Shown here: positions 4,924 to 28,348 of the stretch, piece after piece | How positions within the stretch are numbered: position 1 is the stretch's first letter | Layout: every line of letters starts with the position of its first letter | NCBI GenBank assembly: GCA_020891255.1 | Contig: BQFW01000012.1 | Coordinates: 310,001 to 374,000 of the forward strand | Length of the DNA stretch: 64,000 nt | From: Entomortierella parvispora E1425 | Lineage: Eukaryota; Fungi; Mortierellomycota | Direction: 5' to 3' | Notes under the pieces: model-generated | Told to the model about the DNA's origin: nothing | What the model saw: only the letters and a program-made list of their open reading frames with translations | The model's database searches: none | Program-made: the position numbers and the translations under genes

Positions 4924-6590
4924 TCAGATGAACGAAAAATGAATTCTTCTGTGCGATTTAGCTATTCGCTTCAAGTACTCTTGCCTTTGTTCGTCCTTCT
5001 TGTCCTTTGGTGAGACAATCTTATTCAGATGCTTAAACGACTCTAGGATCCAGCCCCAGTCTTCCTCATTCACCCTTCGTTGATCAAAATGAAGTTCTTT
5101 TAGATGGCTCAGGGACTGCAGCCAATGCAAACCAAAATCCGCTTGAAAAGGGAGGGTCCACTTTCCTTTCTCTGACCCTCGGCCTCGACCTCGGTTAAGA
5201 ACAAGAGTCAGTAGACGAGAGAGACCCGAGAGGCGCAAAAACACTTTAAGACAGTGATCCGGATCCCATCGATCCATGTAAATCTCCAGGTCCCACACCT
5301 GCAACTCGCTGCAGACCCAATCCCGTTTATCAGCCAGCAAATCGGCCACCAGGAGCTTTCTTCCTTTGATCGAGACGAGCTGTGTAAGTGAACACAGGAT
5401 CGAATGCAGCATCCGACTCGTCATGTTCTTACATCCCTGAAAATCCAACTGCTTCAGTGTCTGGGAATGGTGGTTCATCAGCGCCGTGAAGGCTTGGGAA
5501 CCGAACCGCGTGTGAGATAGGTTGAGATCTTCGAGCGGACAGGTCTTCAAGGCATTCAAAAGTACTTCCAACCGATCGTCCTCCAGCCCACATTCCGGCA
5601 AATGGATCCGCACCAGCTGTGGCCAACAAGGCCGCTTCAGATGGATTTCTGTTACCAACGGCTCCAGCGAGGACCCCTCCAACACGCCCCGACACACGAT
5701 CTTGTGCATCACCAAGGACCGGAGATTGGGAGAATGGATGATCTGCAGAACGAAGTAATGAAATGTGGGTTAGAGACAACAGACCTGTTGAAAAGAAATG
5801 TCCTCCCAGGGGGAAAGGCAAAGCGAGCTAGAGAGAAAGGGAGCTGCCCTTGCACCGATCACGGCTCCTTTCAAGGAGAGGACATTGACATTTTTCAAAG
5901 AGTTGTAGAACGCTTCGGCTCTACAGTTGCTTTCGAAGCGACTCGAGTTGATATCCAGTTGCTGAAGGTCCTTGACGTTGGCCAGGGCTACCCAAAAGGG
6001 CGTACGCCACATCCCCAACTGACAGTTGCCTTTGAAACTTTGAAGGACGTCTGTGTGATTTTGAAGCAACTGGGCCACCCTCCGAGGCAGCTTGTTGGAC
6101 GGGGCAGTGGATGGTTTGGATTGGATGACGAGGTGTTGCAGATTGGGATACTGCAGGGAACAGTAATTTGTCGAGAGACTGTCATCGAGGGTCAGCGTGC
6201 GGACAAAAACAGCCTGCTTTTTGACCACGGCCAATGGCACCAGTGCCTCTTCAGGGCCATTGGGCACGGTCAGATCCCCCCAGAGGACAGGCGTGAACGC
6301 ACAATGGAAGGCCCTGGAGACCCTGCAACAGGCCTGAAGAGAATGATTGTCCCCAGCTAGGCAGGTTGCAATGAGGGGCACGATCTCTGGTAATTCAAAA
6401 GTACTTCTGGGGCTAGGGACTTTCTGACTGATATCGGTCTCTATGGTGTTGTTTGCAAGGCGATCAGATTGTCGGTCGTTGGAAGAAAAGACAATAAAAA
6501 GTAGGTGGAGTCCATACCGATAGGCTGTTCATCAGAGGTAGAAGGGTCCTCGTTCAAGGGCAAAGATGTTTCTGGGGTGGCAGTGGACAT
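4924..6590 (-). pseudogene. F-box/LRR tandem copy 2, interrupted by an in-frame TAA at 5772-5770 (probable pseudogene)
   Basis: ORFs 5770-6381 and 4924-5715 are in the same frame, 18 codons apart. The TAA aligns with CAA (Gln) of copy 3 (TGT TTT CAA CCC vs TGT CTC TAA CCC). Exon 1 (6590-6518) and intron (6517-6441) match copy 1. Confidence 0.8.
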
Positions 6591-6892: not shown

Positions 6893-8574
6893 TTAGAAAA
6901 AACAAAATTGAATTCTTCCATTCGATTGCGTTATCCGCTTCAAGTACTCCTGCCTCTGTTCGTCTGTCTTGTCCGTTGGAGCAACAATATTCTTCAGACG
7001 CCTAAATGAGTCTAGGATCCAATCCCAATCTTCCTCCAGCGCTTCTCGTTGATCAAAATGAAGTTCTTCCAGTTGAGTCAGGGACTGTAACAATTCCAAG
7101 CCAAGATCCGTCTGGAAAGGAAGGGAAGACCTTCCCTTCGCTGACGCTGTAGCCCGACCTCGATTGAGAATAAGAGTCCGTAGATGAGAGAGACTCGAGA
7201 GACGCAAAAACACTTGGCAACAGTGATCCGGATCCCTTTCATCCATGTAAATCTCCAGGTCCCAAACCTGCAACTCGTTGCAGACCCAATCCCGTTCATC
7301 CGCCAACAAATCCGTCGCCAGGATCTTCCCACCTTTGATCGAGACCAACCGTGCATGTGAACACAGGATCGAATGTAGCATCAAACTCGACACGTTCTTG
7401 CATTTTTGTAGATTCAGATGCCTCAAATTCCAGGAATGATTGACAATCAACGCCGCATGTGCCTTGGGACCGAACTGTGTGAAAGCCAAATTGAGATCCT
7501 TGATCTGACAGGAATCCAAAGAGCTCAAAAGCGTTTCCAACTGAGTGTCCTCCAGGTCACAATCCTGCAGATGAAGTCGCACGAGCTGTGGCCAACAAGG
7601 TCGTCTCCGCTCGACCTCTTCTACCAAAGACTCGAGCGAAAAGTTTTCTGAGTGATTGTCCGAGTTCGTGATCTTGAGCAAGACCAAGGACCGGAGCCCG
7701 GGTGACTGAACGATTCGTTGAATGAGACAATAAAACATGGGTTGAAAACACCCCACCTTCTCAAAATGGACGTCTTGCCAGGGGGATGGACTAGGAGCAC
7801 CCGAGAGGAAAGGAACCGCTCTTGTTGTAAGCTTGATCATTTTCAAGGAGATGTCTTTGGCGTTCCTTCCTAGGTTGTAAAACGTCGTAGCTCCGTCCTG
7901 GCCCTCAAAGGCAACATGGGTCAGGTCCAGATGCCGAAGGTCTTTGACTTTCTCCACTGCTTCCCAAAAAATTGGTCGCCTTCTCAAGGATCGACAATAG
8001 ACTTTGAGACTTTTCAGGACGTTTGAATGGTTTTTGACCAAGGAGGTATATCCCAGAGGCAAACCGTCATCCATAGTCGAGTCAGGGTCGGACAGGATGA
8101 CGAGGCTACGCAGGTTTGGATACTCCAGGAAGCAGTAGTCGTTCGAGAAATTGCCAACGAATGTCAGTGTGTGGACCAAGCCAGCGTGTTTATCGACCGC
8201 TGGCAACGCAGCCAGTAGTTTATGGGGACCATGGAACAAAACCAGATCACTCCAGAGAACAGGTGTAAAGGCGTCATAAAAGACTTTGGAGACTCTACAG
8301 CAGGTCTGGAGGGCATTTCTGTCCCCGGTGAGGAGGGTGGCAATGACGGGCACGATCTCGGGTAGCTCAACAGGACTTTTGGGACCCCGGACTGGTCGGT
8401 TCTTTGGAGCTACGACAGTTCTTTTTGCAAAGCGATCAAACTTGCTGTTGGTCCTTTTGAATGGAGGGAACGAGGGATATGATATATAAGACTGGTGGCC
8501 ACATCGACTTACGGAGCGCCTAAAGTAGAAGAGTCTTTGACGGACAGCGAGTTGTTCCGGGTAGCAGCAGACAT
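6893..8574 (-). CDS. F-box/LRR protein, tandem copy 3 (apparently intact, longest copy)
   Basis: SPVELPEIVPVIATLL...TCCRVSKVF motif, and RPCWPQLV / LHSILCS / RDWVC blocks shared with copies 1 and 2. Likely ATG at 8574 with a short GTAAGT intron; the exact acceptor is uncertain. Confidence 0.85.
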
Positions 8575-20157: not shown

Positions 20158-22736
20158 TTAACCATCAATCGTCCACCCGTGCGCCAACATCTCGGGCGTA
20201 ATCCCTCTCCGCAAAGTCTCACTTTCGCTGGTCGGTTGACCCCACAAGTGAACATTGTCCATGGAGTGGGTTCCAAACGCGCCTGTTGACTTTGCCACAT
20301 TTCGATCCAGGATATCCTTGCACCCGGTCGGTCCACAAGCCTTGCCCTTTCGAACGTAATCAATGTAGAGACCATACGACCGCTGGCTCGTACCGAGAGC
20401 CATGGTGTGCTTCAGGTTCTCTTCTGCCAGCATCTCTTGCTCCTTTTCAGTCTGCAACTTTTCGACAAGCTTGACCATCCTGACCACATCGATCCAGCGC
20501 GGCGTCCCTTTCCAGTACTCGGCCTGATAGATCCATGAAACCCAGGTATTATACTTCTCGAGCAGAGCCTTTGGGTACTCAGGTCCAATCAGGATGTCCA
20601 ACTCTTCCAAAGCTAGCTTTTGGGCCTCTGGATGGCTCTTCACGTAGGCTCGTTGGTTATCATACACACTCTGCTTTTGCTCATCAGTCATCTCCTTGAG
20701 TTCGTCGTAGGACTTGATCATCTCTTTGGGCAGCCCTAAGATGACGTCTGGTTTGTTTTCGAGCAGCTTGGCTGCGCCCACTGAGTCCTTAGAGTAAGGG
20801 CAGCGAGCTTTTGTCTCCTCGTCCGCATACTGGGTAGGTCCGCACCAAGTCTGAACAAATCGTTGACCGAGCGCTGAGGAGGTGGACATGAACCAGTCCT
20901 CTGTGTACCGTGAAGTATCGACACTGATGATGCTGGAGACGGGGTCGTGGGTTGGCATGAAGATGGACGCTCCAAGAGCATTTCCGTGGGGTGAGATCAG
21001 CACGTTGACATCCCGAAGCAAGTACGCAGTTTCTGCAAGTCCACAGCCATGATCAAAACTCATCCACTTGACACGGAATCCGGCCTGGACCAGTTTCTCG
21101 ACCAATTCGTCCCCATTCAAGAGTCGCCTGGACGATTCACGTTGCAGAATGCCCACAACCAGCTGACGCTTGCCTCCAGCTGTGATAGTGTTCTCATAGG
21201 TCGATTCCAAGTCAACGTAATCCGGATTGCGCTGCCCAATACGACTGGTAACCTCGCCCTGCTCTTGACCATGCCCAGGAACGGCTCGTTCAAAGTTGTA
21301 GTAGCGAGCAATCTCCAAACATTTCAGCTGAGTGGTATCCTGTGCGCCCTTTTCCTGTCGCCTCTCTAGCACGCCGGTGATATTCGACTTTCTGACAAGC
21401 GCCTGGGTCTTTTCAAGGTTTTCGTTATCGTCAAGCCACCGTTTCTTTGTCTTGTGTCCAATGGTTTCGTGCTCTTGGTGATCCAATCCGTGGTCGATTG
21501 CATACTGAGCATTTTTCAGATGACTTTGCCATGTCAAGGGTGTCTTCCAGTAGAAATCCGCGATCTCGTCCCTGAAAGCCTTGTAAACCTCTGTTGGGAT
21601 GTTCTTCTCACAGTACCCAAGAGCACACTGAGAACCAAGACCGATGACAGCCCTTCGGAAACAGATGGGTGCATCCTTGGGAGGCAAGGTCTGAAAAGAT
21701 GTCGAGAGCTCCTCCTCACGAAGTACCAGCTCTCTGCCCGTTTGAAAAAAGTGATCCATCTCCCAAGTTCCTTGACGGTCGATAGGGTCCGCCCAAAATC
21801 GTGCTGCGCGAAAAGTCCATGAATCCCTCGTGTGTCCAAACCGCTTCATCGTACTATTTGTTTACCAGATCAGGGGTTAGAAAGGTTATGCCCGAATCCA
21901 CCAATTGCTTTCGTCTAGTGACCCACAATTATTTTTGGGCCAAACAACCTAACAATTTTTCTCTACCTGTAGAGAGGGGTCATGCCGTTGTACAGCCAGT
22001 GGGAAAAGTGGAAATGCGAGTAGAACGAATGAACAAAGACGGTATCGTTCACAAAGTGGGCCTTGATGGTTTTACTTCCGAACCAAGAAAGGCGTTCCAT
22101 CCGTGGTTGCCACATCTGATCCGACTCTTCATCCGACGCCATGAGGTTGACTTTTGGTACGTTCTTCCTGAAGTATCCTTCCTTTCGAATGAATCCACCT
22201 GAAATTAAAAAAAAAAAAAAAAAATGAGAGGGGGGGTCTTTTTGATCCATTTCAAAGTGCAATACCACACTGGAGGCTGGCAGATCAAGGCAACGCAAGT
22301 GTGCGTGGGTCTTCCTACCTTTCCGATCGACACAAAAGTTTTCTACCACACATTGACGGGATCGCCTGTTCGACTTTGACTCTTGTTCGCTCCTGCTTAG
22401 ATCATCGTCCGTGCAAGTCCAGGTGGCCTCTTGAAGTTTAAAGTCCTGAGCTTTTGTCTCTGCTGTCCATGGGGCATCAGGGGCAGCATTAGCGTCGTTG
22501 TCAGAACCAGAGTTTCCTCTCCTGGAGACCCCGTCCATAGATTGTCCCAGGCTGATGAGCAGGACGAGTCCTGTAGAAAGGATGAGACCAATGAGGACGG
22601 CTCGGCGCTTTGTCCTGGTGGCAGCCAAGACCAAGGCCAGGCATTGGGCAGCCCTGTTCATAGGCCGACTGTGAGGGTTGTGTGGCCCGCTCTGGTCTCC
22701 GCCCGCAGTCAAGGGTAGAAGCTGGTAGGATGCCAT
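20158..22736 (-). CDS. Type II membrane glycosyltransferase family 61 (DUF563/EOGT-like); exons 22736-22319, 22198-21967, 21853-20158
   Basis: N-terminal TM helix (AVLIGLILSTGLVLLISLG). RESSRRLLNGDELVEKL..GF.V...FD...L...DVNVLISPHGNAL..SIFM matches the GT61 R..N.E.....D...HG motif. Introns keep the frame. Confidence 0.8.
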
Positions 22737-22919
22737 GGAGGACAAAGAGGGAGATGAAGAGGGAGAGAGATGACGGATGGTCCACGCTCTGCATTCATTG
22801 CAGGCAAGGACCGAGGAAAGACCGTCTTGTACCCTTAAGGAAAAAATCATTGGCCAATCAGCGCTGGCCGCTGCGGTGGCAGTGCGTGCCTGTCAATGTG
22901 TGTATCTATTACGGTGTCT

Positions 22920-23264
22920 TCAGTCATTGAACAGGATTTCCGTGTAATTTGACCTGATGATACTCACGTAAGGCGTAAGGTTGCGGCAGGTGCAATTCGT
23001 CCTTGCATAACCGGCTGGATGAATTTGGAAAATAGTTTCTTCGGTGTTTGAGCCGACGTTGGGGAGTGGTTGCGACCAAGGTCGCGATGATCTTGCAAAC
23101 GGAGGAAGGGTTGCTCTGTCTGATGATGTGAGCTGAGGGTACCCTGATGCTGCGATGTTTAAGGCGGCGTTGGTGTCCCGGCCCCGAATGGTATACCCGC
23201 ATCGATGGGATATACATTCGGCGTTTGTGCTCTCAGCTGCCCCGTCAATCCTGACAAGCCTCGC
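22920..23264 (-). mobile_element. Relic of a TnpB/Fanzor-type RuvC nuclease C-terminus (transposon-derived; truncated, pseudogenised)
   Basis: Stop-free minus frame not shown in the ORF track (no early start codon): ARLVRIDGAAESTNAECISHRCGYTIRGRDTNAALNIAASGYPQLTSSDRATLPPFAR. RDTNAALNI (23180-23154) matches the RD-x-NAA-x-NI RuvC-III motif, preceded by a partly decayed Cys region. An in-frame TGA lies at 23267-23265. Confidence 0.7.
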
Positions 23265-23520
23265 TCAAGCGACGAGCTCGGACTAGTCGGATGAAAAAAA
23301 AAGCAAAAGGGACATTGCTTAAGCGAATTATCTTCCTTTGTTTTGCATACCATTGTGTGAAGTAGAGGGTCCATGTCCCCCCAGAGTCCAGGAATCCATT
23401 CCCGTTACGAACAGTTTGATTGAGTTTTCCATGGATCGCCCTCATGAGCTGGTCCAGAGGTTTCCCCCAAGCGATTTCTTTCTTCCCAGTTGAAGCCACG
23501 GAGTCCGGACTGTCGGGCTT

Positions 23521-24090
23521 CAGTCCTAAATTCTTCTGCATTGCAGAGACTTTGTTTGGACTACCGGCAAAAACAAGTTACTAAAGGCAGCACAGTCCCT
23601 GCATAGATTGATCTTATCCAACTTACAAGTGACTGGTGATACTATTTGACTGCAAGAACCCGCATCACTGGACCATTCGAATCCAGTCGAGTACCATTTT
23701 CCACGCTTCCGCTATGGAGCTTGATTGATTGGTCTTGAGAGTGCAAATACTCCAGTAGTTGACACAACTGCATGTAATATTCTGTTATTGGCAACAAAGG
23801 TCCCAGAGTATCGACGCAAAGTCACTAGTAATTTGGTACTTGATGTAGAGACAGGGGAAGATATTAGCCTTCCTCTAAAGCACAGGTATGTATGATCTCT
23901 TCACCGGGATGTATCGTTCTTCTCTATTCTAGTGTGGTGAATGCTGAGTTTTGATTGCGGGTGGCACTACATGTGTTGGGGGATGGAATGCTACGCGTGT
24001 GGATGAACAGAAAGAAGCAACGCGACATGCGGCATGGAACGTTCTTTTCAGCAGTCACTGAAATTGTTTTTTTTTTTACGTATTTCTCGC
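23521..24090 (+). pseudogene. Possible decayed gene fragment with a 47-nt intron (23886-23932); family unknown
   Basis: One frame reads LLKAAQSLHRLILSNLQVTGD...ATKVPEYRRKVTSNLVLDVETGEDISLPLKHR|SVVNAEF*LRVALHVLG... with several stops and a frame-preserving GTATGT..TCTAG intron. Confidence 0.25.
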
Positions 24091-24274
24091 CACCAAGTGG
24101 CCATTGGTTGCACCATTATGTTTCTTTCCTCAAACCTGCATTCATCTTTTGTCCCATCTCATTTCATCTCAACTGCCTGCCGCCACTCGTCGACAACAAC
24201 ACCTCATTAATCCTGGCATTCTCAGCTTCCTTCTCAGTTCATTCGCCTGTGCACATTGACCCATCCACGCAACA

Positions 24275-25885
24275 ATGTCAATAGCATCCCAGCCTTCTAC
24301 ACATTCCCCCAAAAGACCAGAGCTCAAGGCAACAGCGTCTTTTATTCAAAAACGCGATCACTTTCCCCGGGTCTTCAAAGACCCACCGAACGCCGTTGAT
24401 CTGCTGGCCAGAGTATACCCAACTGGTAAAAGCTGCCTTCTACTTATGACCTCAAGTGTAACATTCGCTTGTTCCCTTCGAGGACTCATCGTTTTCTTTC
24501 TTCTGTTCATAGAATCGGAGCTTACAAAATTTCCCCATGTCGAGATCAACAACAGCGCCGTGGATTCCTTTCATCTCTTCCAATTTGGGCCATCCGGGAA
24601 GAATTGCGAACATATCTTTCGCGCTGTCGTCTTCCTTTGTCACTACCTCCGAGGACGAGCGCATCTACTTGATCCCGCATCTCACTTTTCAACGTCAAAA
24701 GATGGACAGGATTTCAAGGACCTGGCCACAGATTTAACAAAACTGGAACCGAGCCTCGTCGGTGTCTCTGCCTCGTCACTGGTAGCCCTCTATGAACGTA
24801 TTGTCCTCGAAAGGCGGAAACTGGACACTTTTCTGTCTCAGGCGGTTGGCGTGGAATGGACAGACACTCATCTGTCCAAGTTGGCGCGGGATCTGGTCCA
24901 ATTTGATAATGATATCAAAGCCCGCGACACTCAACGGAAATCGGCCACGGACAACTCAAAAGAAGCGCCACGGGAAGGGGGCAAATCTGCTCAGGACTCA
25001 GAGAAAGCTACGATCCTTGTGGCGTCAGGATTGGAAAGTCGATCATCGGCTCCAGAGTCAGCGATAGCGACGACTAATGCAGCAGTGGGATCGGAATCAT
25101 CAAGTTCAACGGTGGATCTGCAAACTAAAGAACAAAAGCTCGCTAGAAGAAACTCTAAGAACACAGAGCAAGGACAGTCCGCCTTACCTCTGAGCAATAC
25201 TGCTTCATATCCTGTTGGAGGAATCGTCATTACTAGTACGACGCTTCCCTCGGGTGCTGGTGTGGCACATCCATCACAACAGTCGCAAGCAGTGTCAACA
25301 TCAATACAGCAATCAGCACCAGTCCCAATACAGCCTGCTAAAGCGGGGCTCAGCTCACAACTAGAGTCACTAGGAGCTCAACCATATTCAAATCAGGGAT
25401 CTCAATCGCCTTCATATACCCACCACATGCCTACCTCGGTGCCGTCTCCAGTCAGCAGGAATAATGACAGGAAACGAGCAGCAGCAGTGTCAGTCGATAT
25501 TGAAATTGTCAAGTATCTTCGCGAGGAGATCTTTGGCATCATCCGGTCTGAAATTGAGAAGGTCAACCAACAGCACCATATTCTTCGGACCGAGATTGAG
25601 AATATCAACGCGCGTCATCTAAGGCTGGAGGAGGCCTTTGTACAAAGCCAAAAAGCACTTCGAGCGCGACTGGACCTTGATAATACAAACAAGACGTACC
25701 ACGATTACCAGTTGGCAGTCTTGGGTCGGGACCTTCGCAATACACTCGATAGGATCCAGGTTGTTGAATCGCGCGTCGGACTTCGGCCCCTACCAATCGA
25801 TCCTGTTAGTCCCCATGCCATGGCCACGCCTCACCCACCTGCTGCCCCACAACAGCAGAATAGAGAAGGGCCTCGCCAGCATTAA
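24275..25885 (+). CDS. Hypothetical protein (globular N-terminus, low-complexity linker, C-terminal coiled coil); probable intron 24426-24512
   Basis: Long ORF with an 87-nt GTAAAA..CATAG in-frame segment of intron-like composition; heptad-like IRSEIEKVNQQHHILRTEIENI. No family recognised. Confidence 0.65.
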   Translation: MSIASQPSTHSPKRPELKATASFIQKRDHFPRVFKDPPNAVDLLARVYPTGKSCLLLMTSSVTFACSLRGLIVFFLLFIESELTKFPHVEINNSAVDSFHLFQFGPSGKNCEHIFRAVVFLCHYLRGRAHLLDPASHFSTSKDGQDFKDLATDLTKLEPSLVGVSASSLVALYERIVLERRKLDTFLSQAVGVEWTDTHLSKLARDLVQFDNDIKARDTQRKSATDNSKEAPREGGKSAQDSEKATILVASGLESRSSAPESAIATTNAAVGSESSSSTVDLQTKEQKLARRNSKNTEQGQSALPLSNTASYPVGGIVITSTTLPSGAGVAHPSQQSQAVSTSIQQSAPVPIQPAKAGLSSQLESLGAQPYSNQGSQSPSYTHHMPTSVPSPVSRNNDRKRAAAVSVDIEIVKYLREEIFGIIRSEIEKVNQQHHILRTEIENINARHLRLEEAFVQSQKALRARLDLDNTNKTYHDYQLAVLGRDLRNTLDRIQVVESRVGLRPLPIDPVSPHAMATPHPPAAPQQQNREGPRQH

Positions 25886-26025
25886 AAAAAATAGCAACAC
25901 TAAAAGGTTTTTTTTCTATGTTGAACTGGGTGGCGGAACAGACTAGATTTGCTCTAATGAAATTGTCGCGGGTTGTCAGCAGCAGACATGCCACCATCCG
26001 GTACGGGCGTTTCGATCTCTACTGG

Positions 26026-27837
26026 CTATTCAAACCAGTCCTCCCCTTCTTCATCAAAAGAACCGTCATCGTCATCGTCATTGTCATCGTCATCATCATC
26101 ATCATCATCATCGCCATCGTCATCGTCATCGTCGTCGTCGTCGTCATCGCCATCATCATCATCATCATCATCATACTCATCATCATAAAATGGGTGTAGA
26201 TATTGGTCTCTCTCCTCAAAATTTTCATATCCGTCCTCCTCCGCCCAGTTTCCCTTCTTTTGGACGTCCTTAAAAGTGATGCCCCTCCGCTTCAACTCTC
26301 CATAGTACTCCCCCATATCGTCGTCGTCTACGGTCATGCTCAGCTCCTTAAGCTGGGAGAAAGCTGACAGCATCCATCGCCAATCAATAGCTTTCACTCG
26401 ATAACAGAATGATCTCATTCGGTATGGCTCTCTGAAATCCAATGTTTTCAGCTCTTGCATCGTCTCCAGTGACCCCATCCCAAGGCTTAACTGAAGCTGT
26501 ATACGCTCGTTGCGGTAGCCCGTAAAGAGTTCGTACCACGGAGATACCATTTTAGGTCGAAGGTCCAGATCCTGGACGTGCTTCAGAGTTGACAGCTGTT
26601 GAAAGACTTGTTGGTACGCATCCTTCTGATCCATGTAGATGGGCACGCCCCACTGTCGTAGATCTTGACAAAGCCAAGGTCGAGTCGTTACCTGGACAAT
26701 GTCCGAAGCCAGAATGCCGTCTGCCTGGACGGAAACAAGGCGTTCGCAAGAGCAGAGGCAATCGTTCAGCATGGCGCTGGTGAACGCACTGCATTCGTCA
26801 AAGCACAAATGAGTCAAGGTCCCTGAATGGATGGCCAAGAGTGCTCGGGCCGAATGAGCGCCGAATGTGGGACAGTGAATGCTGAAGACTTGAAGATTGA
26901 AGGAGAGACAACCTAAAGCTTTGCCCATGATTTGATCCCCCAATGGGTGGGCTGTCTCCACAAATTTCAATTTTTTTAGATGTGGCCAGAGTGGCGGCAC
27001 CTCAGTCTTGGAGATCTTCTTGATCAAGGATACCAACGAAGAAAGCAAGTTGTCAACGCCATCTTGATCCCATGTTAACTCTTCGAGATCTGGGGACTGG
27101 GTCAGAATGCGAACAAGTTGGTCAAGAGACTCCTGATCCAAACACATATTCCTCAGGTGAACCTTTCGGAGTCGTGTCGTTGATGCAGACTCCAGTTGTG
27201 AGGGCGTGCCGAAGATCCATCCATACATAAAGGTCAATTCCAGCAATTGAGAGCCACAGAGGGTCCAAAACGCAGTCGTTCTCTCGGCGCCTACTAAGGC
27301 CGCATCGAATATCTTTAGGTTCTGAAGAGTCGGAAGCTCCGGAAGAGTGTCAAGAGTGCTCGGTTGTTCTGCTTCTGGATTCCATTCGGCAGGAGGACCA
27401 CATCCCAAATCTAACATCTTCAATGTTGCGCTGTGCTTGCGAATGAGAGCCCTTGAAGACCCCTCCATCCATGTTAAACCTTCGAACTCAAGACTGGTCA
27501 GGTGGGGGAACTGGATTTTCAAAAGTCGCCGCCAGGGCGCCGACAGCAGACGCAGTGATTGAACAAAGCGAGCATTGGCTAAAAGTGAGCCGGAGGGATA
27601 ACTGAAGGGATTCAAAAGGGTGATTTCGGCCCACAGTCTTGGAGCAAAAACCCAGTAGAAGGACCACGAGACTTGGAGACAGGATGCAAGAGCACTGGTT
27701 CTGCCTTTGCCACTCGAGTTATGGATATGAGAGGCGACCATATTCAGGATCTCTGGGACATGGAGAGGATTTCTACCGTCTCTACAAACGCTCTGTGATC
27801 GAGGGACTACAGTGGTTACGGGTATGGAATCAGGCAT
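26026..27837 (-). CDS. F-box/LRR protein related to the tandem array, with a poly-Asp C-terminal tail (about 603 aa)
   Basis: NPLHVPEILNMVASHI...CLQVSWSFY F-box-like motif; WPHLKKLKF / LNDCLCSC / WLCQDLRQW blocks homologous to the array copies. Confidence 0.85.
   Translation of the reverse strand: MPDSIPVTTVVPRSQSVCRDGRNPLHVPEILNMVASHIHNSSGKGRTSALASCLQVSWSFYWVFAPRLWAEITLLNPFSYPSGSLLANARFVQSLRLLSAPWRRLLKIQFPHLTSLEFEGLTWMEGSSRALIRKHSATLKMLDLGCGPPAEWNPEAEQPSTLDTLPELPTLQNLKIFDAALVGAERTTAFWTLCGSQLLELTFMYGWIFGTPSQLESASTTRLRKVHLRNMCLDQESLDQLVRILTQSPDLEELTWDQDGVDNLLSSLVSLIKKISKTEVPPLWPHLKKLKFVETAHPLGDQIMGKALGCLSFNLQVFSIHCPTFGAHSARALLAIHSGTLTHLCFDECSAFTSAMLNDCLCSCERLVSVQADGILASDIVQVTTRPWLCQDLRQWGVPIYMDQKDAYQQVFQQLSTLKHVQDLDLRPKMVSPWYELFTGYRNERIQLQLSLGMGSLETMQELKTLDFREPYRMRSFCYRVKAIDWRWMLSAFSQLKELSMTVDDDDMGEYYGELKRRGITFKDVQKKGNWAEEDGYENFEERDQYLHPFYDDEYDDDDDDDGDDDDDDDDDDDGDDDDDDDDDDNDDDDDGSFDEEGEDWFE
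26066..26180 (-). repeat. GAT/GAC trinucleotide repeat encoding the poly-Asp tract
   Basis: (TCA/TCG)n on the plus strand; translates DDDDDDGDDDDDDDDDDGDDDDDDDDDDNDDDDD. Confidence 0.9.
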
Positions 27838-28348
27838 GATGAGGTGGATGATTGTGGAAGGTAGCGGCAGTTCGGAGGGAGAAAGGGAAGGAGGGTTGGA
27901 GATGGAAAGAGAGAGGAAAAGAAAGGGCGCAGGAGAGACTGTCAAAGAAAATGAGTATGAAGCGTGGTCACAAGGCTCTCGCGGCCTCTGTCCCAAAGTC
28001 AATCAACACACCCGCCTTGGATCAGAGAGAGCCCATTCGAACGCCAAAACATGACGCTTGTGGACAATGGCATGGTTTATTGAAAGCCATGATCTACGCG
28101 GAAAACACAATCCAAGTCGCGTTGACGCAGTAGGATGGCCCGCTGGGTAAAGGCGGCTGTTGGCAATGTCTTCAGTCAACTACGTACATCTCGTTTGCAA
28201 AGATGTGAAGGGGCATGTCCATGAGGCGAGTGTCCCAAGTTCACGAGCGATTATCCCAGCTGTTGCTTGTTGCTGGGCGATGAAAACATCCGTGCAGTCT
28301 CTCTCTGTGACTGGCATTGGTCACTGAGGTGCACTCTAGACTCAGGTG

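Follow-up and report, generated by a model that had tools for sequence, protein, structure and literature searches.

The window, by which we mean the whole 64-kb stretch of Entomortierella parvispora DNA analyzed here, has a G+C content of about 49% and contains spliced genes; neither an Rfam family nor a tRNA was found in it. On its minus strand, EMPS_08488 encodes a glycosyltransferase of family 61 (GT61), and a divergently oriented plus-strand ORF occupies 24275–25885. The 1.5-kb space between these two holds the feature of interest, a relic made up of short coding pieces that lies on the same strand as EMPS_08488 and aligns with the C-terminal end of a group of large Fanzor1-type proteins. 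Fanzor1 proteins are eukaryotic homologues of TnpB, RNA-guided RuvC nucleases carried by transposons. The relic and its neighbor on the minus strand comprise the following features:

23303–23359, minus strand: piece 1, HTMVCKTKEDNSLKQCPFC, in the frame of ORF 23159–23374 (frameshift-aware alignment; tblastn and tblastx of relatives).
23294–23302, minus strand: T9 homopolymer and frame break 1, with one base extra relative to the relatives (sequence; DNA alignment with L001, the locus of the closest relative).
23260–23301, minus strand: piece 2, FFFIRLVRARRLSE, the basic linker between the two zinc-ribbon halves, in the frame of ORF 23245–23541 (tblastn of relatives P0001 and P0005).
23043–23261, minus strand: piece 3, 73 codons, the peptide picked out by the first-pass annotation, covering the second half of the zinc ribbon and RuvC-III (translation, phmmer, HMM).
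22987–23043, minus strand: piece 4, the C-terminal tail ending in RLCKDELHL, which follows frame break 3 (about 23045–23043) and aligns to the final residues of P0001.
22931–22972, minus strand: conserved non-coding block just past the point where the relatives have their stop codon, with about 83% identity to L001 (blastn, 22971–22931).
22910–22919, minus strand: the 10-mer AGACACCGTA, which follows an AG here; in L001 the identical 10-mer, in collinear position, comes after a CAG acceptor.
20161–22736, minus strand: GT61 gene EMPS_08488; an adjacent ORF of 563 codons matches part of it with 100% identity.

EMPS_08488 is not part of the relic, and its annotated ATG (22736–22734) lies 195 bp downstream of the last significantly conserved base of the relic (22931). 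Over the region of its first exon (21969–22736), the match to the annotated protein is limited to 84% in 256 columns, since about 40 internal codons of ORF 21963–22850 are removed as an intron in the gene model; that ORF has its own ATG at 22850, which differs from the annotated start of EMPS_08488. About 130 nt upstream of the 5' limit of the relic there is a 32-nt near-palindrome (23491–23522, with overlapping 21-nt arms that are 81% complementary), which showed no connection to the relic. Further along, a trinucleotide repeat at 25918–26228 encodes poly-Asp on the minus strand, forming the acidic C-terminal tail of a 658-codon ORF (26026–28002); translated in other frames, it gives runs of Ile/Val or of Ser.

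A frameshift-tolerant protein-to-DNA alignment of the extended P0001 frame of L001 against the minus strand of the window traced a single collinear path (23359–22987, minus strand) of 124 aligned codons in four pieces, with 81 of the 124 identical. The limits of the relic, 23359 to about 22930, were the same with fourteen metagenome loci fetched via the family alignment. In total, about 430 bases survive, namely some 124 C-terminal codons and about 55 nt of conserved 3' non-coding sequence reaching to 22931. The damage consists of three frame breaks, one TGA within the aligned path, a deletion of four codons, and the replacement of one zinc-ribbon Cys by Ser.

Piece 1, which marks the 5' limit of detectable homology and matches positions 325–345 of the family HMM (E 0.02), carries the alternative RuvC-II Glu codon (23335–23333) and the first zinc-ribbon CxxC (CPFC, 23314–23303). 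Here the relic reads S-L-K-Q-C against S-S-K-T-C or T-S-K-x-C in the relatives, the first [TS] residue alone being retained. Frame break 1 was placed by the frameshift-aware alignment before the codon at 23301; this break, located within the T9 run, may reflect an error in the assembly, but the other defects and the truncation are independent of it. Piece 2 terminates at frame break 2, which is accompanied by the 4-codon deletion and the TGA (23267–23265).

By direct translation, the minus-strand peptide that begins at 23264 is open for 114 codons (to 22923) and then meets a TGA. In its piece 3 portion, the third zinc-ribbon Cys has become Ser (23231–23229), giving AAES at the site of A[VI]EC in the relatives, and the fourth is retained (23216–23214). 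The RuvC-III Asp codon of RGRD is readable at 23177–23175 (minus strand), 11 residues past the fourth Cys, a spacing equal to that of all long relatives. Downstream of the zinc ribbon, piece 3 retains GYTIRGRD, NAALNI, and the family tail motifs LPPF and PWSQPLP. The first-pass annotation had described an intact catalytic RuvC-III Asp, a partly eroded zinc region, and a TGA ahead of the frame, and all three can be read in the sequence, with the TGA immediately preceding the frame. The CxxC half and the fourth-Cys half of the zinc finger lie in different frames, and the C4 finger is incomplete, with three of its four Cys. At the columns that are near-invariant among close relatives, the relic deviates only at the third zinc-ribbon Cys. 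It is a clean example of how relics split over three frames hide from ORF tracks.

Large-database searches carry the identification. A phmmer search of the relic peptide against 1.84 billion representative proteins returned 58 matches at E ≤ 1e-3, six of them at E ≤ 1e-10, and an HMM built from 16 relatives scored the peptide at 86 bits (E 3.4e-26). The closest relative, P0001, came from a word-indexed search (71% identity over 72 residues; pairwise E 3e-37). It is a 153-aa protein encoded on a 960-bp contig of a soil metagenome, has an intact zinc ribbon (CPFC...CTNSQC), and contains RDNNAALNI. At the DNA level, the relic is only 65–73% identical to its nearest relatives, the metagenome copies P0001 and L007–L009. 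Pfam was less telling: PF07282 (Cas12f1-like_TNB) matched the relic over profile positions 43–60 only, with 13.5 bits and E 0.081, below the 26.3-bit gathering cut-off, and P0001 itself reached 22.3 bits against that cut-off. A profile check upheld the proposed family with the dedicated HMM and fell short of threshold with the existing Pfam model, and database comparison on this scale confirmed that the match is beyond chance, deciding the matter where Pfam alone is weak. Pfam and NCBIfam searches of the peptide and the adjacent ORFs gave nothing but this sub-threshold PF07282 match. A database protein search of the relic region gave no annotated protein belonging to the window itself, and a search for annotated E. 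parvispora copies of the family turned up proteins of M. alpina and A. ambigua alone, with none from E. parvispora.

We consider it very probable that the relic is what remains of a Fanzor1-type gene, a pseudogene fragment without function on the minus strand, and that it comes from a lineage of very large proteins that is widespread in the Mortierellaceae. The unannotated, decayed Fanzor/TnpB-type relic proposed at first pass is borne out by the family HMM and phmmer results and by the PDB profile and Foldseek searches of its family described below. The further proposal that this genome hosts or hosted an element of the Fanzor family also holds, in that the relic shows that the family was once present. 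As a pseudogene, the relic is a member of the already known family Fanzor1, a real but ordinary fragment.

DNA similarity to L001 and L008 runs beyond the position of the relatives' stop codon and through the 42-nt block, reaching its 3' limit of significance at 22931. At the start of this block stands GTGAGT (22967–22962), which resembles a 5' splice site. Most family loci have a donor-like GTRAGT 0–18 nt past the stop codon (L001:782–787, L003:5670–5675, L004:12190–12195, L005:6729–6734, and L017:1064–1069), and the variants at or near family stop codons are GTAAGT, GTGAGT, or GTAATG. The guide RNA of TnpB and Fanzor systems derives from the 3' end region of the transposon (PMC10432273). These motifs suggest a conserved 3'-UTR intron in the family, at the place where a Fanzor guide RNA is expected, and the block in the window is probably the start of this intron and of the guide-RNA region. 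The putative intron of L005, with a branch-like CTAAC and a CAG acceptor, contains a perfect 8-bp hairpin. The 10-mer AGACACCGTA may conceivably represent an exon, or the end of the element, after a short 3' intron; homology past 22931 is not significant, and 30 of 300 shuffles scored equally well.

Alternatively, the relic may have been exapted, either as the promoter or 5'-UTR of EMPS_08488 or, through its 3' block, as a guide-RNA (omega/fRNA) scaffold usable in trans by intact family copies elsewhere in the genome. The relic shares its orientation with EMPS_08488 and lies close by (195 bp), the block at 22972–22931 is better conserved against L001 (83%) than the coding part (65–73%), and the block is located on the 3' side, from which guide RNAs of this kind come. 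However, an RNA fold of 23060–22900 was unremarkable and no stabler than those of shuffled sequences (z −0.67), the block is supported by a single independent relative, and a young relic would be conserved even without function, all of which leaves exaptation highly unlikely. Stated conditionally, if the guide RNA of this family were made from or next to the 3'-UTR intron, the relic could yield a scaffold RNA loaded in trans by intact giant Fanzor1 copies elsewhere, or it could serve as the 5'-UTR or promoter of the GT61 gene; we give this proposal a small chance of being right.

The front of the gene is missing. Searches with full-length relative proteins (tblastn) showed that everything ahead of piece 1, the RuvC-I Asp included, is missing not only from the relic but from all 64 kb of the window. 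Upstream of 23360, the family HMM found nothing in 21500–26500 beyond the relic, and a frameshift-tolerant alignment of 23360–24300 with the upstream parts of six relatives scored no better than shuffled DNA. The locus L007 supplies 1.9 kb of upstream Fanzor coding DNA from the closest lineage (HMM positions 15–321), and tblastx gave no match in the window to that part. Neither tblastn nor blastn found a second copy in the 64 kb. Because the gene has lost its RuvC-I Asp, its WED/REC parts, and its long N-terminal half, and what is left is out of frame, no nuclease can be made from this locus. The first-pass description of the locus as the best lead in the window for an uncharacterised programmable nuclease system was accordingly overstated, as RuvC-I and everything else at the front of the protein are gone from the window copy.

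A stretch further upstream, GKKEIAWG...LYFTQ (23541–23350), had been put forward tentatively as a decayed RuvC-II part. This translation does exist (ORF 23245–23541), yet its alignment is no better than that of shuffled DNA, it has no HMM match, and the upstream coding DNA (1.9 kb) of the closest lineage has no counterpart there; we reject the link. The true upstream continuation of the first-pass peptide is in another frame, at 23359–23303, and contains the alternative Glu and the first CxxC. Element ends, a TSD, and a partner transposase had also been named as features to look for. The surroundings of the relic yielded no convincing TIR or TSD and no transposase relic, and none was recognisable around its relatives L002–L005.

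Could the relic still belong to a working gene, with breaks that are short introns or assembly errors and a front half in unrecognised exons? Family genes are rich in introns, and one break falls in a T9 homopolymer. The breaks, however, are shifts of one or two bases with continuous homology on either side and are therefore not introns. Furthermore, a near-invariant Cys is gone, full-length relatives and the profile find nothing further in the 64 kb, and only about 900 bp are available up to the next gene (24275), against more than 2 kb needed. We regard a working gene as very unlikely. That a short string resembling RD-x-NAA-x-NI arose by chance in a random open frame, a view for which only the weak Pfam score speaks, has a negligible probability given the family HMM match (E 3.4e-26), the collinear matches of three additional pieces and of non-coding sequence, and a pattern of identity by codon position that has the signature of coding sequence.

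That pattern also bears on the history of the locus. Identity between the relic and L001 is 69%, 85%, and 41% at codon positions 1, 2, and 3, respectively, which indicates that most of the divergence arose while both lineages were coding and under purifying selection. Divergence of this selected type, together with the loss of just one near-invariant residue, argues that the death of the copy was recent relative to its split from the nearest known relative. A copy of a Fanzor1-type gene formerly resided here on the minus strand, and its parent was probably functional until fairly recently. The 5' side of this parent gene would then have been truncated by deletion or rearrangement, and the fragment would now be in neutral decay between EMPS_08488 and ORF 24275–25885. 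The relic marks a past insertion next to a GT61 gene; it has little significance alone and is of interest as a pointer to a family of large Fanzor1 proteins.

Those relatives whose origin was looked up all belong to the Mortierellaceae. The six longest matches in this family (802–1823 aa) are proteins of Lunasporangiospora selenospora, Linnemannia hyalina, Mortierella sp. AM989, Gryganskiella cystojenkinii, and Modicella reniformis. Among the shorter matches, named relatives occur in Linnemannia gamsii, Mortierella sp. AD032, and Mortierella alpina, and the remainder come from metagenomes or run assemblies. Relatives looked up at NCBI are named "hypothetical protein" or "unnamed protein product." The gene models are intron-rich. 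The long N-terminal parts of the six big relatives have no Pfam match and no XPG/FEN1 domain, and the C-terminal ~470 residues of the relatives align well (alignment A1). In A1, the conserved elements follow in the order GTDYG (RuvC-I), a long helical insert, G-x-AGTGVGSR, E-x-x-TSKTC-x-FC, NGAVEC-x-NP-x-C, GYTIR-x-RD-x-NAA-x-NIA-x-AG, and LPPF, and many members have RD-x-HSA-x-AIA in place of RD-x-NAA-x-NI.

Two observations on individual members concern how such copies are annotated. P0002, a 132-aa protein from a JGI metagenome and the second-closest relative of the relic, looks decayed (RF for the first zinc CF, QY for QC, and GSCS for AGYS), and dead copies of the lineage are therefore also called as small genes in metagenomes. 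In the Linnemannia hyalina locus L004, a pair of 55-nt inverted repeats (5413–5467 and 7170–7224; 87% complementary, 1.7 kb apart) spans the 5' end of gene model P0014 and may be a MITE-like insertion read into that model by annotators.

Several features place the family within Fanzor1. The signature described for Fanzor and TnpB proteins has the RuvC-I Asp 125–275 residues upstream of [TS][TS]-x-x and a C4 zinc finger, with RD 5–50 residues later (PMC3627910), and the long relatives fit D-X(229–276)-[TS][TS]-xx-C4-X11-RD. In Fanzors with a rearranged RuvC-II, an inert residue (Gly or Pro) occupies the canonical position and the Glu lies about 45 residues further on (PMC10530073). In the relatives, the canonical RuvC-II residue is Gly, and an alternative Glu precedes TSK some 35–40 residues on, by our own count in A1, in keeping with that distance. 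Of this pair, the relic shows just the alternative Glu codon, since the canonical position falls within the part that was lost. Searched against all PDB sequences, the A1 profile of 16 relatives matched no proteins below E 0.1 other than SpuFz (E 0.0085) and PpFz1 (E 0.036), and PF07282 was matched by 7 of the 16 members (best E 1.3e-6). For an AlphaFold2 model of P0016:330–802 (pLDDT 70), the six best Foldseek matches in the PDB were Fanzors (E 6e-6 to 2e-4, probability 1.00), with Cas12 variants and TnpB ranked after them. The TM-scores to the Fanzors were modest (0.25–0.37), and the fold assignment therefore rests on the ranking and the motifs together. Judged by sequence and predicted fold, both taken at the level of the family rather than of the relic, the relic's family is Fanzor1.

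The Fanzor1 family as such has been published (PMC3627910, PMC10432273, PMC10530073, PMC11423790). A supplementary table (PMC10432273) lists a protein of Mortierella sp. AD094, the lineage of which looks different, and none of the papers in the library searched named both Fanzor and Mortierella in the main text. Any value for genome-editing discovery is in this Mortierellaceae-wide lineage of unusually large Fanzor1 proteins, not in the copy in the window.

Compared with the solved Fanzor1 proteins (SpuFz of Spizellomyces punctatus, 8GKH and 9CEU; PpFz1 of Parasitella parasitica, 9CF0), the relic's family has in common the RuvC-I Asp of GxDxG, Gly at the canonical RuvC-II position, the alternative Glu before [TS][TS]xxC, and the C4 ribbon followed by RD-x-NAA; of these, the relic itself retains RD, the Glu, and all but one of the four Cys. 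They differ in size, since the solved chains have about 590–730 modelled residues whereas intact members of the relic's family have 802–1823 aa, making them 1.3 to 3 times longer. With the bacterial TnpB, IS605 OrfB, and Cas12f proteins (PF07282), the family shares the zinc ribbon and the RuvC-III RD, but it differs from them in having the eukaryotic features of introns, large size, and a rearranged Glu.
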